A stretch of 64,000 bases of DNA, from assembly GCA_900088475.1 (NCBI GenBank), contig FLMG01003675.1:1-64000 (forward strand), given 5' to 3'. This DNA comes from Hyphochytrium catenoides. Its lineage: Eukaryota; Protista; Hyphochytriomycota. Below, in pieces: positions 16,663 through 38,281 of this stretch. Every line of letters starts with the position of its first letter. Positions within the stretch are counted from its first letter, which is position 1. Under the pieces are notes generated by a model, which was not told where the DNA came from, made no database searches, and saw only the letters and a program-made list of their open reading frames with translations. Position numbers and translations under genes: made by a program.

Positions 16663-17264
16663 ACCCCGTCCCCAGCGTCTTCCTAGGAGGAATATTAGAT
16701 GTCTCCTTTCACTTTGACGATATGACTGCCATTAGCATCCGCGTATTTACCTTAACACAATGCCCCCTTGTGATATGGCATGGCTCAGATCGTAGACCCA
16801 TCAGGCTCTGAGTTGTGCAAAGAGGAGTGAATGGCGACACCCTGCACTGCCTGTTGTTGAGAAGTTGCGATAGGAGATAAAACAGATAGAGTGTAGAAAT
16901 AGCCCTTTCCCGCAAGGACTAGCTAGAATGGTATAGAGCTCTCAAGTGCAGATGCATCACCTTCGAGGCACCTACCCCAGCAAAGTGTAGAGGCCGTGAC
17001 AACTTCAGTCAGGCCCCGGAGATGGGATTATTGTGCAAGTCAAACAAAGATACAATTTGGCGGGGATCTTAGTTGTAGCAGGAGCAGCATGCATCAGGTG
17101 AAATGGTGGCCATTTTATTGAGACGATGTATATAGACTATGTTGGTTCTAAACCTTTCATGCATGTGAAATGCATGTGAAGAAAGATGACCTTCGCTTAA
17201 ACAGACAGTCTCTCGAATGCGCGAGATGAGATGATTGGGTAAGACTTTTTCTTCGGGGCTTGGT

Positions 17265-17353
17265 GGTGTTTACAAACACCAGTAGAGATAGAGATAATAG
17301 TCCTTATAGGACTGCTTTTCGTGTACTGTTGCCTCTGAGGGCAGCAGTGACAC
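17265..17353 (-). other. Three stem-loops in the H4 3' flank
   Basis: On the transcript strand: gtgt(c)actg-c-tgcc-ctcaga-ggca-a-cagt-acac (17353-17321), agtcct-ata-aggact (17313-17299) and ggtgttt-gt-aaacacc (17280-17265). Confidence 0.6.
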
Positions 17354-17369
17354 TATTTGGTTGAACAGC

Positions 17370-17711
<342 letters not shown>

Positions 17712-18159: not shown

Positions 18160-18262
18160 CTCGTATCCTGAGCTCTGATTGGCGGGATTTTGGTGAGAGA
18201 GAGGACTGAAACAGTGCTCCAAGGTGTGCAGGAATCCCTCCAATCATAGGCCTGCAATCGAG
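18160..18262. promoter_or_regulatory. Bidirectional H4/H3 promoter with two oppositely oriented CCAAT elements
   Basis: Minus-strand caccaaaatcccgCCAATcagagctc (18195-18170) faces H4 and plus-strand cctCCAATcataggcctgcaatcga (18237-18261) faces H3. The same extended motif recurs upstream of the other two H3 copies. Confidence 0.65.
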
Positions 18263-18511: not shown

Positions 18512-18955
<444 letters not shown>

Positions 18956-19339
18956 GCGAAGTTGTCAAGTGCCTCGCTACCATCAACCAGTAGTGAGTAC
19001 CCCTTTCCCTTTGCTTCCCATGTATGGTGTTCTAGCAACAACACTCGACGCGGAAGAACCTTTCTGCAAAACTATCCTTATTTAGCCTGTGAATAGTATT
19101 ACCGTCACAAACCATCTTTACCGACGATGTATATTACAGTCAGCAAAATTTTTCTTTACATAACATTATCGGGCTTTTTACTTGGCGAGAGATGGACCAA
19201 ATGAAGCTGTTGACTTGCTGATGAACTTGAAGCTCCTAACCAATCAATACAGAACATAACTAATTATTATTGGTAACCTTTCATTGCTACCAAAATTCTT
19301 GTGTTGCCATTTCTCACTGATCTCCCCAAGAACTGTTGG

Positions 19340-19615
19340 GACCTCTCACCTGCATGAGCTTCACATTCCTTACCCGTTCCCTAGCACAATGTTCTAGTGT
19401 AGCAAGCTCTTCCTTGCGACGTACTACACAACAGTCTTCCTTTAAATGAGCCATATCCGTCTTTCAGGCTGAGGAGGTCATACTAGGTTAGGACCAGGAG
19501 ACTGCTGGTTGCGCAAACACCGTTAAAGCTGAAGACATCCAACAGCTTCGCTTCATAGTATTCCTTTCTTAGTTTCTTTGCTTCTGGCGATGACGCCTTC
19601 ATTGGAGCGCGGGCA
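19340..19615 (-). pseudogene. Heavily decayed relic of the H1-like gene (cassette copy 1)
   Basis: Blocks ctctcacctgcatgagcttcacattccttac, gagccatatccgtctttcag, gaggtcata, ctgctggttgcgca and ttctggcgatgacgcctt are colinear with the intact H1 gene (22720-22990), with deletions and stops. Confidence 0.75.
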
Positions 19616-19920
19616 CATTGTCTTACTTCTTGACGCGTCTCTATGACTTAGGTAGAACAGAATCCTCTCGCTGTCAGATCCATGATCCCTCTTCTTCCTT
19701 CTTATCCGCAAAGAGTCAAGGGGCTATCTCTTATTGCACTGTTGGCCTCCTTATATATATACCTGTGACCCGCTCTGTCTCGCGATGCCGAATGCAAGTA
19801 CGGCTATACAGTGAATGTCAGTTGGGATCCCTCTCATCAAGGGCTAACAAGAAAGAAGGGTCAGACTGGCTGAACAGATGCTGATGCTGATACATCATAA
19901 CACTGCCAAACTCGATTTTA

Positions 19921-19960
19921 CCGCCAAAAATCCTCCAATCAGGGGCCTCGAATTGATTTA
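19921..19960 (+). promoter_or_regulatory. Conserved CCAAT element upstream of the H3 variant
   Basis: cgccaaaaatcctCCAATcaggggcctcgaattga, about 230 nt before the ATG at 20166. Confidence 0.6.
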
Positions 19961-20165
19961 AGGCAGCACTACAGGAAGATGGATGAGATGGACAAGAACC
20001 ACGCAGCTGCCGCGCCTCAGCCCTCCTTCTCTGGACTCATTGGCAGAAGAAGGTAGCACAATCCGCTCCTCCTCCTCCTCACATATTCATTATTGTACTT
20101 TCTCCCTTCAGCGCAAACCCTTGGAAGCATCAGCCATCAGCAATTAATAACAACACCGAGTAGTG

Positions 20166-20585
20166 ATGGCCCGCATCAAGCAAACTCCTCAAAAAAAGTC
20201 CACTGGAGGCAAGGCTCCTCGTAAGCAACTCGCTACCAAGGCTGCTCGCAAGAGCGCACCTGCCACCACCGGCAGTGTACAGAAGCCTCACCGCTACCGC
20301 CCAGGGACCGTCGCTCTTCGTGAGATTCGAAGATACCAAAAATCGACGGAGCTGCTCATCCGCAAATTGCCTTTCGAGCGCCTAGTACGCGAAATCGCTC
20401 AGAAGTACAACCCACATATCACACATTTCCAGGAATCCGCCATTCTCGCTCTTCAAGAGGCCGCGGAGGCCTACCTTGTTGGGATCTTTGAAGATACCAA
20501 CATGTGTGCTATCCACGCCAAGCGAGTTACAATCAAGCGGAAGGACATGCAGCTGGCGCGCCGTATCCGCGGCGAGAGGGCGTAA
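20166..20585 (+). CDS. Divergent histone H3 variant (intact, 139 aa)
   Basis: Complete histone fold with no stops or frameshifts: [16 protein letters not shown]...[13 protein letters not shown]...[27 protein letters not shown]...[22 protein letters not shown] is at 20166; the track's 20163 start is a GTG. Confidence 0.92.
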
Positions 20586-20724
20586 ATAGATGCAATTGTC
20601 ATGCCTTACTATTATCTTGTCAGTGGTAGGAAAGCTGCAAGAGTTCTTCCTTCTTTAGTGTTAGTATACCTGTAGTTGATATTTTAGAACTATACTCCGT
20701 GTGTTTGTGTAAATGAAGGGCCTT

Positions 20725-21200
20725 TCAAAGGGGGCCTCGCCGCTCGGCGGGGACCGACGGCGACGATGAAGCACTTGAAGGTGATGACTTTGCTGATGAT
20801 GGTAATGAGGAGTTTGAAGCCCCTGGCGTAGACTTTGATGGCCGCCGAAAGTGCGTTTTCTAGCATTCGCTCTGCTGGTGTTTTTCTCTCCTTGGGAAAA
20901 AAAAAAGGCTTGGAATCCCTCTCACCTGAACGGGCTCCCGATGCATTGATCTAGTGCGGCATTGGTAGGGTGATGCATTCAACAACAAAACCCTTACTTC
21001 CTTTCTCTCTGCGACATTCTCCTACACATTTATGTCTTCCTTTTCTCGAGCCATGTCTGCTGTTCAGGCAGAGGAGGATAGAAGTTAGGGTCAGGAGGGC
21101 TTGTTGCTGGTTGCGCAGAAGAAGATGAAGTATCAGACATCTCAACCTCTTCTTCCTGGTCTTTCTTCGTCGAGTCTGTTTCTACTGGCGGTGGGGCCGT
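20725..21200 (-). pseudogene. Frameshifted H1-like pseudogene (cassette copy 2)
   Basis: Colinear with the intact H1 (cgccgagcggcgaggccc, accagcagagcgaatgc, ttcaggtga, agacatggctc, gcaaccagca), with indels, a homopolymer run near 20897 and in-frame stops. Confidence 0.85.
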
Positions 21201-21592
21201 GAATGAAACCTTCTCGATTCGCTGACTTGGTTGGCGAGACTGTAGGGATGTTTCATGAATTGAAGCAGCGCCATCCTGTACTTCCTTCTGTCACCTACAT
21301 TCACCTTTCAATATCGTCGCTCCTCTTCTTTCCTTCTTATTCCCAAAAGGTGTTCCACACAATCTGTGTGCGTTACTACAAGTAATAATAAGTGTACATA
21401 TGAAGTAGTTCTATGTAGTTCTATGGTAGTTCTATCAAGTATCCTCATCCGATTTACAGTACTAAAATAACAGTAAGACGTCTCCTAGTTCCTAGACTAC
21501 GGTAGGAACTAAGGCGATACGATGATAGAACTACAGTACGAAGGCTTATTACTCCCTCGGACATCAAACATCAACCTGGCAACAACGGGTTA

Positions 21593-21630
21593 GCGCCAAA
21601 ATTTCTCCAATCAGAAGCCTGGAATCGATC
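21593..21630 (+). promoter_or_regulatory. Conserved CCAAT element upstream of the H3 pseudogene
   Basis: gcgccaaaatttctCCAATcagaagcctggaatcga. Confidence 0.55.
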
Positions 21631-21887
21631 TAGGAGTGCTTGGAACGTAGACGACAGCAACTTTGCTTTTGTAAAGACAGAGAAGAGAGCCACCTGCTAT
21701 AGTTCGTCTCTCCCTGGAGTCACCGGTAGGAGGAGTGAACTGTAAAAAGATAAGCAGAGTACGATTCGAGCTCCTGATCGAGAGAACAGCGGCATTGATT
21801 AGGATGAACAGTCTTCACTATTTATTGTTACACTTTCTCGCTTCAGCGCAACCCGTTGAAAGCTTCAGCCATCTACAAGACCGAGTA

Positions 21888-22318
21888 ATGGCGGGTACCA
21901 AGCAAACTCCCCACAAAAAGTCCTCCACCAGAGGCAAGGCTCCTCATCCGAAGCAGCTTGCCACCAAGGCTGCTCGCAAGAGCGCACCAACCACCGGTGT
22001 CGCAAAGAAGCCTCACAGAAGATACCGCCCAGGAGCCAACGCGTCGCGGGAAGTAAGACGATACCAAACGTCCTCCGACCTTGTCATCCAGAAGTTGCCT
22101 TTCTGACGACTAGTCTATGCCATCGTTCAGGAGAATTTAGGGTTGGAGTCTCTTTCCAGGGATCGGCCATGCTGGCCCTGCAAGAGGCCACCGAAGCCTA
22201 CCTTGTGGGGCTCTTTGAGGAGACCAACCCCTGCGCTATCCACGCCAAGCGCGTCACTATGATGCCTGAGGACATCCACCTGGCTCGCCGTATTCGCCGA
22301 GAGAGGTTTTTGACATGA
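21888..22318 (+). pseudogene. Histone H3 pseudogene (cassette copy 3)
   Basis: [34 protein letters not shown]...QKLPF, then TGA (22104-22106) at the Q68 position and a frameshift in loop 1, then [50 protein letters not shown] in another frame. Confidence 0.93.
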
Positions 22319-22549
22319 AATATGGCATATGCCTTCCCACCATCACCTCAGTGGTAGGAAGGCTGCACTACTTTCCCCACTGTTGCTACATCACACCACC
22401 TATCGCCAAGGACTTACTCTTACGAGAAACCAGCCTTGTTTGGTCTGTAAATAGTAATACATTGGCCGCAAATGTGCCCTTTAGTATATAAAAGTACTTC
22501 CAAACAAATCATAAAAACAAAGAGTATATAGTACACAAGGAAGGACCTG

Positions 22550-23100
22550 TCAAGCGGGCCTCGCTGCTCGGCGTGACGATGAAGCACCTGACGTTGATGA
22601 CCTTGCTGATGGTTTTGAAGAGCTTGAACCTCTAGGGGTAGCCTTTGATTGCCGCCGAGGGTGTTTTGCTGGCATTCGCTCTGCTGGTTTCCTCTCCTCC
22701 GGAGAGAGCTTGAAAGCTCCTTTCACCTGAATGAGCTTTCCATTTTTTACCGCATTCCGTAGGGCATTGTTAAGGTAATGTACAGCAAACCCTTCCTTTC
22801 TCTCCGCAACGTACTTCGCTATTTCTTCTTTTGTTGAGCCATGTCTGTCTTTCAGAGCGATAATGGCTTCCTTGACGAGGTCATAATAGGTGGGGCCAGG
22901 AGGGGCTGCTGGTTGTGCAGATGATGAAGCTGCTGCAGATGTCCGAGTTCGCTTTGTACTCGTATGCCTTCTTTCTGGCGATGGCGCCTTTCGCTTTTGA
23001 CTTGGCGGCGCCGGAGTCCTGTCGACGTAAGTAGGTTAGCTGGTGCTGCCGGCAGAGATACCTAATGTGCTCGAAATTATGGAGCTTACCGTTCTGCCAT
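22550..23100 (-). CDS. Linker histone H1/H5-domain protein with a short Arg/Ser-rich tail (2 exons: 23100-23090, 23018-22550; 159 aa); absent from the ORF track
   Basis: ATGGCAGAACG|gtaag...gctaac...cag|GACTCCG (71-nt intron) gives MAERTPAPPSQKRKAPSPERR...PTYYDLVKEAIIALKDRHGSTKEEIAKYVAERKEGFAVHYLNNALRNAVKNGKLIQVKGAFKL...SRRAARPA*. The P.Y..LV.EAI.ALKDR.GS...I.KY and G.L.QVKG.FKL motifs define the H1 winged-helix globular domain. Confidence 0.9.
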
Positions 23101-37100: not shown

Positions 37101-37519
37101 TCTTGTATCGGTGTTGCCTCTATTTGCTCATCCTTCCTTGGCCCCGTTTGGCCCGCCATAAGGGAAGTGAGGGTAACAAAGACATCGCCTACGAGTACGT
37201 GAGCTAGGGAGGGAATCTTCAAACGTTCGTTTCTGCATCTTCTCTCCGAAGGCCGTTGCTCATCATCTAGAGTAAATCTTGGCAGCTGGCCTTCTGTAGG
37301 ACCAAACTGCTTGGCTCCAGCGTACTGCCGAACAGCCAGTCTAAGTACCATGCATCGCTCAGTAGATAGACTGCACATACTCATTTTCAATTCTCCTTCC
37401 TAGAAGGCAAGCCCCCCACTAGGAAGTGGAATTTGACGACGAAGAGGACACTTCAGAGACTAATCGCAACTAGACAAGAAAAAACATCAGTAGTACCTTC
37501 TCCACCAGATTTGGGCTTA

Positions 37520-38281
37520 ATGAAGACCTTCACAGTAGCAATCGTCCTTGCTGCATTAAGTAGCCTCTCTGGCCCCTTCACTTCATGTAGGGCTGAGCAG
37601 ATACAGACGTCAAACTCCACATTCCTCCGAGGACCATCGTCTTCAGAACTAGAACCCAAGGCGTCAGGAAAGGCCGCATTTCAACTATACCTTTTCGCCC
37701 AGACCTGGCTCCCGAGGTTCTGCCTTGGCACCTCATATCCTGGCTGTCAGGAGCCGTTGCCCGTCTGGAACCAAGCCGCCACCATTCATGGTCTGTGGCC
37801 CGAATACGACGACGAAAGTGGTTCCGCTTCCAACCCTGGACCATTTAACTGTGCTCAGAACTATGATTCCTCGCTCGTTGATAACGAAGATCTTATTGAG
37901 GCGTGGCCCAACGTAAAGTCCGGTGCAGACCCACTCTCAGAGGAATATCATGATTTCTGGGAGTATCAGTGGAACAAGCATGGCTCCTGCTCCGGATTGC
38001 GGCAGGCAGATTACTTTCGGCAAGTCATCGCCTTGTTTAACTCTTTCCCTACTCCAGCAGTGCTGCGGGAGAACGTGGGAGATAGTGTCCCATTAACCAC
38101 GCTTGTTAACGCATACGGTGGCAAGGGTTATGTCGCTTTTCGATGTTCAGGCAAGCAATTGCAGGAGATCAGAACTTGTTGGGAAAAGAAGCCCGATAAT
38201 AGCGTCGGGAAGCAGGTTATGTGTCCGGCCTTTGTCCAGAGCTCGTGCACCAGCTCGTTGGTTGTCATAAGCTCCTTTTAG
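37520..38281 (+). CDS. Secreted ribonuclease T2 family protein (intronless)
   Basis: Hydrophobic signal MKTFTVAIVLAALSSLSG; CAS I ATIHGLWP; CAS II FWEYQWNKHGSC; conserved cysteines. Confidence 0.95.
   Translation: MKTFTVAIVLAALSSLSGPFTSCRAEQIQTSNSTFLRGPSSSELEPKASGKAAFQLYLFAQTWLPRFCLGTSYPGCQEPLPVWNQAATIHGLWPEYDDESGSASNPGPFNCAQNYDSSLVDNEDLIEAWPNVKSGADPLSEEYHDFWEYQWNKHGSCSGLRQADYFRQVIALFNSFPTPAVLRENVGDSVPLTTLVNAYGGKGYVAFRCSGKQLQEIRTCWEKKPDNSVGKQVMCPAFVQSSCTSSLVVISSF

Follow-up and report, generated by a model that had tools for sequence, protein, structure and literature searches.

The histone cluster analysed here contains a second intact histone H3 reading frame that departs from its neighbour at K36, K79 and T3, and the question is what such a gene encodes: a working nucleosomal H3 peculiar to this lineage, a centromeric histone, or a protein already on its way to being lost. 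The window, namely the whole stretch of 64,000 nucleotides from Hyphochytrium catenoides that was analysed, also holds a canonical H3, an H4, a broken H3 and several linker-histone sequences, and these neighbours supply much of the evidence considered below.

An intact and divergent H3 gene beside canonical H3

The two complete H3 genes are as follows.

20166..20585 (+): divergent H3 paralogue, coding sequence (hereafter the variant); ATG at 20166, TAA at 20583-20585, 139 amino acids
18545..18955 (+): canonical H3, 136 amino acids; the reference for all comparisons and the presumed conversion partner; head-to-head with H4

The variant lies 1.2 kb downstream of canonical H3. Its reading frame is intact, as the initial annotation had observed, with 139 codons on the forward strand followed by TAA and with neither stops nor frameshifts inside the coding sequence. 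It is intronless and sits within the histone cluster, and all three of its indels are in frame in the codon alignment. BLASTP aligned it to canonical H3 with 115 identities in 139 positions (83%) and 3 gaps (E 1e-80), and the Pfam Histone family PF00125 matched residues 8-135 (E 6.7e-40), so that the whole fold is covered. The closest PDB chains are H3.1, H3.2 and H3.3 (E about 3e-66), and no CENP-A or Cse4 chain appeared among the top 60 PDB matches. The N-terminal tail is of the H3 type, being alignable with the canonical tail over its full length, with seven columns changed or inserted. The variant is neither an allele nor an assembly duplicate.

Residues changed and residues retained

Three segments carry the most conspicuous changes, the first two located by BLASTP and codon alignment.

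20172..20201 (+): variant tail changes at residues 3-9; T3I, and ARKS replaced by PQKKS
20265..20285 (+): variant tail changes near K36; an extra Thr, G34S and K36Q
20403..20426 (+): variant loop 1 codons, KYNPHITH; hypervariable and extended by one codon; K79N is present, and R83, the minor-groove arginine, is gone

Every substitution that had been listed earlier from the letters was found in the codon alignment of the variant with canonical H3. At the start of the tail, A7P and R8Q are combined with one extra lysine before K9 (TA-RKS to TPQKKS), although the exact column assignment is ambiguous there, and the extra threonine of the second segment precedes G34. Loop 1 changes from EFKQDLRF to KYNPHITHF, which makes it one residue (Thr) longer and brings in K79N and R83H. 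The remaining listed changes are Q68E, G86E, V89I, M120K, P121R and I124M, to which the codon alignment adds three that the earlier list did not hold, L103I, L109M and S135A. The replacements in the helices (V89I, L103I, L109M and I124M) are conservative, whereas the dead sister copy described below has radical ones.

The retained residues were also as first reported. K4, K9, K14 and K27 are all kept in the codon alignment, the last within its entire AARKSAP context, and BLASTP together with the codon alignment bore out the presence of F84 and T107 and the H3-like character of the tail. Moreover, K18, K23, K37, K56, K64, K115 and K122 are kept.

Locus architecture and duplication history

The remaining histone sequences of the cluster are listed here.

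17370-17681 (-): H4 gene, head-to-head with canonical H3
19342-19515 (-): broken H1 copy behind canonical H3
20712..21067 (-): decayed H1 remnant of the variant cassette; 68% identical to 22537-22855, frames broken
21888..22318 (+): sister H3 pseudogene; broken by the stop TGA in place of the Q68 codon (22104-22106) and by 2 inserted nt (22134-22135)
22553-23026 (-): linker histone H1, the sole intact copy, behind the pseudogene H3; PF00538 at E 1.2e-14

A linker-histone sequence thus stands tail to tail behind every H3 copy, and the triplicated H3-H1 cassette is a case of complementary decay. The variant and pseudogene cassettes are 72% identical over the coding sequence with about 90 nt upstream and 55 nt downstream, and 68% identical in their H1 part; A7P, the extra lysine and the flanks are common to both. 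From this flank identity and these common tail changes, the two cassettes are evidently sister copies that arose, in an old tandem triplication, from an ancestor already divergent. Since the pseudogene carries A7P and the extra lysine, the tail of the variant is older than the duplication that separated the two.

No sign of a viral island was found at the locus in base composition or in the neighbouring ORFs: the former is uniform, and the latter resemble ordinary intron-containing host genes. Farther along the window, inspection by eye alone picked out HGLWP and KHGSC, motifs like those of RNase T2, in the ORF at 37433-38281 (+). The segment 42648-43607 (+) encodes a complete SYLF/Ysc84-domain protein of 319 amino acids, whose best named matches are from oomycetes at about 50% identity; at this identity, the source organism would be a stramenopile outside the sequenced oomycetes.

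Gene conversion and selection

Divergence between the variant and canonical H3 was measured on their codon alignment as dN/dS by the Nei-Gojobori method (NG86), partitioned by region. The synonymous distances are those of a mosaic, with dS of 0.33 in the tail codons, 0.07 in the tract from K37 to Q76 and 0.92 in the 3' half, which makes this last part old.

20283..20402 (+): near-identical tract, codons K37 to Q76; 3 of 120 nt differ from canonical 18656-18775 (97.5% identical)

A mutational cold spot at 20283-20402 was considered and ruled out, since the pseudogene has dS >1 in the same tract. The same comparison indicates a gene-conversion patch between canonical H3 and the variant, that is, a partial re-homogenisation of the two. 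Q68E (20376) is the only amino-acid difference within the 120-nt tract, and the stop codon TGA of the pseudogene falls at the same codon.

The initial annotation had named dN/dS near 1 as one mark of an incipient pseudogene; that check was run, and the overall value for the variant is 0.21. Across alpha2-alpha3 (51 codons) omega is 0.105 at dS 0.82. The 8 codons of loop 1 behave quite differently: dN is about 0.47 in the variant and 0.47-0.61 over the variant and the pseudogene, with synonymous sites saturated, and the loop is essentially unconstrained in both alike. The dead sister copy has omega of 0.10 in alpha2-alpha3, as low as that of the variant, so a low omega records past constraint and not necessarily a present one. 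This value of about 0.10, together with several in-frame indels, also means that the pseudogene at 21888-22318 probably functioned, until not long ago, as another divergent H3 variant. For the variant itself, the codon comparison shows the signature of purifying selection outside loop 1 over a long past, which is compatible with a recent loss of function.

Whether the variant could have been neutral throughout its history was addressed by a clock-like simulation of the 98 codons outside the converted tract, in which the canonical branch was allowed only synonymous changes and the variant branch evolved neutrally. Under neutrality 26-30 amino-acid differences are expected, compared with 19 observed (P 0.0005-0.005), and neutrality over the whole history of the variant is rejected at P<=0.005. 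In the same simulation a reading frame free of stops arises under neutrality with P about 0.3, and for that reason the integrity of the ORF was dropped as an argument for selection.

Promoter-like motifs and 3' structures

The flanks of the variant contain three elements that recur elsewhere in the cluster.

20088..20104 (+): 17-nt motif CATTATNGNACTTTCTC, initiator-like, lying 78 nt before the ATG of the variant
19930..19948 (19921-19948) (+): CCAAT-box element upstream of the variant, read by eye and by blastn of 19918-19960 against 21590-21632
18975-19001, 20605-20630 and 22334-22364 (+): 3' UTR stem-loops of canonical H3, the variant and the pseudogene, respectively, about 20-45 nt after the stop

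The 17-nt motif has two matches in the 64-kb window versus 0.25 expected; its second copy stands 77 nt upstream of the canonical ATG, and upstream of the pseudogene the motif is degraded. CCAAT elements related to that of the variant were found for canonical H3 (about 18232-18262 and 18176-18196) and for the pseudogene (21590-21632). Next to the CCAAT element stands an ATTTTGG-like motif, and the two recur together before every H3 copy, at a distance of 230-370 nt; they may form a module common to the promoters of histone genes in this organism. The promoter-like motifs of the variant resemble those of canonical H3, with nothing stage-specific about them.

Downstream, the stem comprises 8 pairs in all three H3 copies, of which 2 are compensatory, a weak signal with only three sequences. 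It is unlike the metazoan histone stem-loop, and the Rfam histone stem-loop model gave no match at any H3 copy. A more classical stem-loop belongs to H4 (17241-17285, minus strand), where RF00032 scores 19.5 bits, below threshold. Taken together, the retained promoter-like motifs and the 3' stem fit a gene that may be transcribed, and are no proof of it.

Relatives in databases

The whole protein and its residues 66-130 served as queries in two word-indexed searches of 5.8 billion protein clusters. Both returned only ordinary H3s and no orthologue, and identity did not exceed 84% for the whole protein or 80% within residues 66-130. Among the best-match H3s that were aligned, none had E68, the loop insertion or KRK, while KDMQ was present in several ordinary environmental H3s. 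Metagenome contigs, whose DNA was scanned both exactly and with peptide-level degeneracy, gave 0 matches to the variant, and so did viral contigs in a degenerate scan. Exact copies of the variant and of canonical H3 are both absent from a 15-billion-protein collection and from the contig index, a result that is uninformative on expression. Three sequencing runs, from one organism and one study and only guessed to be DNA, contain 0.66 of the sampled words of 20100-20700. The variant thus appears so far to be unique to the genome of Hyphochytrium catenoides, hyphochytrids being barely sampled. The AlphaFold2 monomer model of the variant was unusable (pLDDT 45, pTM 0.23).

Competing explanations

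Centromeric H3s have unalignable tails, a fold about 50-60% identical to H3, a diverged alpha2/CATD and usually neither F84 nor T107, and KDMQ occurs in yeast Cse4. The initial annotation had pointed to the loss of Q68, the longer loop 1 and KDMQ as CenH3-type traits and had suggested a nascent centromeric-like histone, which would mark centromeres or neocentromere-like domains. The traits themselves are real: Q68 has given way to another residue, loop 1 has gained one and evolves fast, as in CenH3/CENP-A, and I124M gives KDMQ; moreover, there is a change at T3, which Haspin uses as its site at centromeres. However, KDMQ is not specific to CenH3, since ordinary H3s have it. The tail is in register with H3 at K4, K9, K14, K18, K23 and K27, where CenH3 tails are unalignable; the fold departs from H3 in only 17 of its 99 columns (about 83% identity), compared with the low fold identity of CenH3; alpha2, the CATD core, is changed only at V89I, L103I and L109M, with G86E at its start; and among Q68, F84 and T107 only the first is replaced (by E). 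The gene is also a DNA-level derivative of the neighbouring H3, with flanks in common with the sister copy and the 97.5% identical tract, and not a CenH3 orthologue, and its best PDB matches are those of ordinary H3s, without CENP-A or Cse4 in the top 60. The centromeric reading is therefore unsupported by tail, fold identity, F84/T107, alpha2 and orthology, all of which are H3-like, and we consider it very improbable. In oomycetes (Phytophthora sojae), which are the closest relatives that have been studied, an orthodox CENP-A bearing the CATD is present (PMC7082073).

The main alternative is an incipient pseudogene, whose function or expression was lost recently, which has not yet acquired a disabling mutation, and whose appearance is flattered by conversion from its canonical neighbour. 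The sister copy, with an equally low omega in alpha2-alpha3, is already dead, and the H1 linked to the variant has decayed; the loss of the conserved Q68, K79, R83 and K36 is unusual for an H3; a neutral reading frame would escape stops with P about 0.3, and earlier damage may be hidden by the converted 120 nt; and the protein clusters and the metagenome and viral contigs yielded no orthologue. Against this stand the rejection by simulation of neutrality over the whole history, the in-frame nature of every indel and the conservative replacements in the helices. In addition, the promoter-like motifs and the 3' stem were kept while the flanks drifted to about 70% identity, and the time during which a gene can be dead but intact is short relative to a history of dS about 0.9. 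We regard recent loss as possible, with the balance of evidence tilting against it.

Two further readings concern what the protein would do. The variant might be a stage-specific packaging histone (for example of zoospores or resting spores) acting with the linker histone of the third cassette, in which loop 1 and the dyad region alter stability and not marks. The ancestral cassette did pair a variant-type H3 with H1, and the only intact H1 is in the sister cassette; R83H and the longer loop 1, as well as M120K/P121R, fall at DNA contacts (PMC11050016); and nucleosomes made unstable by a variant H3 are known from testis-specific H3.5 (PMC4714512). The promoter motifs, however, are like those of canonical H3 and not stage-specific, and this reading, which we find unlikely, is a sub-case of the preferred one and not an exclusive alternative to it. 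It is similarly doubtful that the variant and the linker histone of the sister cassette would constitute a dedicated chromatin type without K36/K79/T3 marks and with a fast-evolving loop 1, which would set apart a compartment (such as silent or integrated-virus DNA) or represent an early CenH3-like specialisation soon after duplication.

We consider it probable that the variant is a lineage-specific, selectively maintained, non-centromeric nucleosomal H3 without the K36, K79 and T3 marks. The initial annotation had offered a lineage-specific variant unable to carry these marks as its other reading, and this is the one best supported by the old local duplication, omega of about 0.1, the promoter-like motifs and the lack of a database counterpart. 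Further caveats apply to it. The databases searched gave no orthologue in other organisms, and so no cross-species conservation to lean on; the locus is decaying, since the sister H3 is dead and, of the three linked H1 copies, only one is intact; and a repair of 120 nt by gene conversion would not have required selection.

Expected properties of the variant nucleosome

The variant goes back to an H3-H1 cassette that was duplicated in tandem, long ago, in an oomycete-related stramenopile. As a selectively maintained nucleosomal H3 it would be transcribed from a promoter with CCAAT and initiator-like motifs of the canonical type, and its product would pair with H4 and then be incorporated into nucleosomes. 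We infer the pairing with H4 because the residues of alphaN, alpha1, alpha2, alpha3 and the four-helix bundle are unchanged or conservatively changed. In fact, R40-K56, R63-R72 (but with Q68E inside this span), C110, H113, K115-T118, D123 and L126-I130 are the same as in canonical H3. Residues of this kind make the contacts with H4 and the four-helix bundle of H3-H3', and DNA is bound by those in alphaN, alpha1 and L2. As these contacts are kept, the variant should form nucleosomes.

Set2 and Dot1 methylate K36 and K79, respectively, Haspin phosphorylates T3, and some K9 enzymes depend on R8. Nucleosomes containing the variant would accordingly be expected to have no Set2-type methylation at K36, no Dot1 methylation at K79 and no Haspin phosphorylation at T3. 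Writers and readers of K9 that need the A7-R8-K9 context would probably be evaded as well, with K4 and the ARKS context of K27 intact. The longer loop 1 without R83 would be predicted to loosen the DNA contact at SHL +/-2.5 and to alter the disc surface around K79, and M120K with P121R would add positive charge near the dyad. In yeast, H3 R83A is viable, and K79 lies at the centre of the LRS surface (PMC11050016). The net outcome may be nucleosomes that are blind to elongation-coupled marks, comparable to those of primate H3.Y and H3.5.

If expressed, the variant would be a natural experiment, offered by a little-studied lineage that is sister to the oomycetes: a single nucleosomal H3 in which the residues targeted by Set2, Dot1 and Haspin and the R8-K9 context are all missing at once. 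It would reveal which chromatin functions tolerate the loss of elongation marks, and it would illustrate the birth of an H3 variant from tandem duplicates through gene conversion, a relaxed loop 1 and complementary gene loss. Primates, plants, ciliates and Dictyostelium already provide examples of lineage-specific H3 variants, so that the value of this one at present is mainly that of a catalogue entry and a candidate for proteomics.

Comparison with known H3 variants

Replacement H3 genes of the H3.3 type lie outside the histone clusters, often contain introns, are polyadenylated and are expressed outside S phase. The variant is intronless, is situated in a histone cluster and has promoter-like motifs in common with canonical H3.

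A stramenopile comparison comes from Phytophthora, where PiH3-1 and PiH3-2 are two non-centromeric H3 forms with different modification patterns (bioRxiv 10.1101/2022.02.18.480484). A related stramenopile lineage thus has, like the organism studied here, more than one non-centromeric H3; the two Phytophthora forms, however, differ at about 10 positions and are not reported to have lost K36 or K79. Orthology of the PiH3 forms to the variant was not found in the protein-cluster searches or in the alignment of best matches.

The testis-specific human H3.5 is without K37 and has K79N, a change that leaves nucleosome formation undisturbed (PMC4714512). It is similar to the variant in having lost a tail lysine at or next to K36 (K37 in H3.5) and in the same K79N. 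However, H3.5 differs from H3.3 at 5 positions and owes its instability to L103, while the variant has 24 differences, a longer loop 1 and an altered L2.

Human H3.Y is not known to have an insertion in loop 1, and it keeps R83. H3.Y and H3.X, both initially mistaken for pseudogenes, nevertheless resemble the variant in being young, lineage-restricted and intronless H3 paralogues that lost modifiable residues, K79 included, and kept the fold; the difference is that H3.Y loses S10, K14 and S28 rather than T3, R8 and K36. H3.Y is naturally without S10, K14, S28 and K79; its gene, which the original annotation had classed as a pseudogene, is expressed, and the protein is incorporated into chromatin (PMC2935562). 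The likeness between H3.Y and the variant is one of convergence in unrelated lineages, not of homology.
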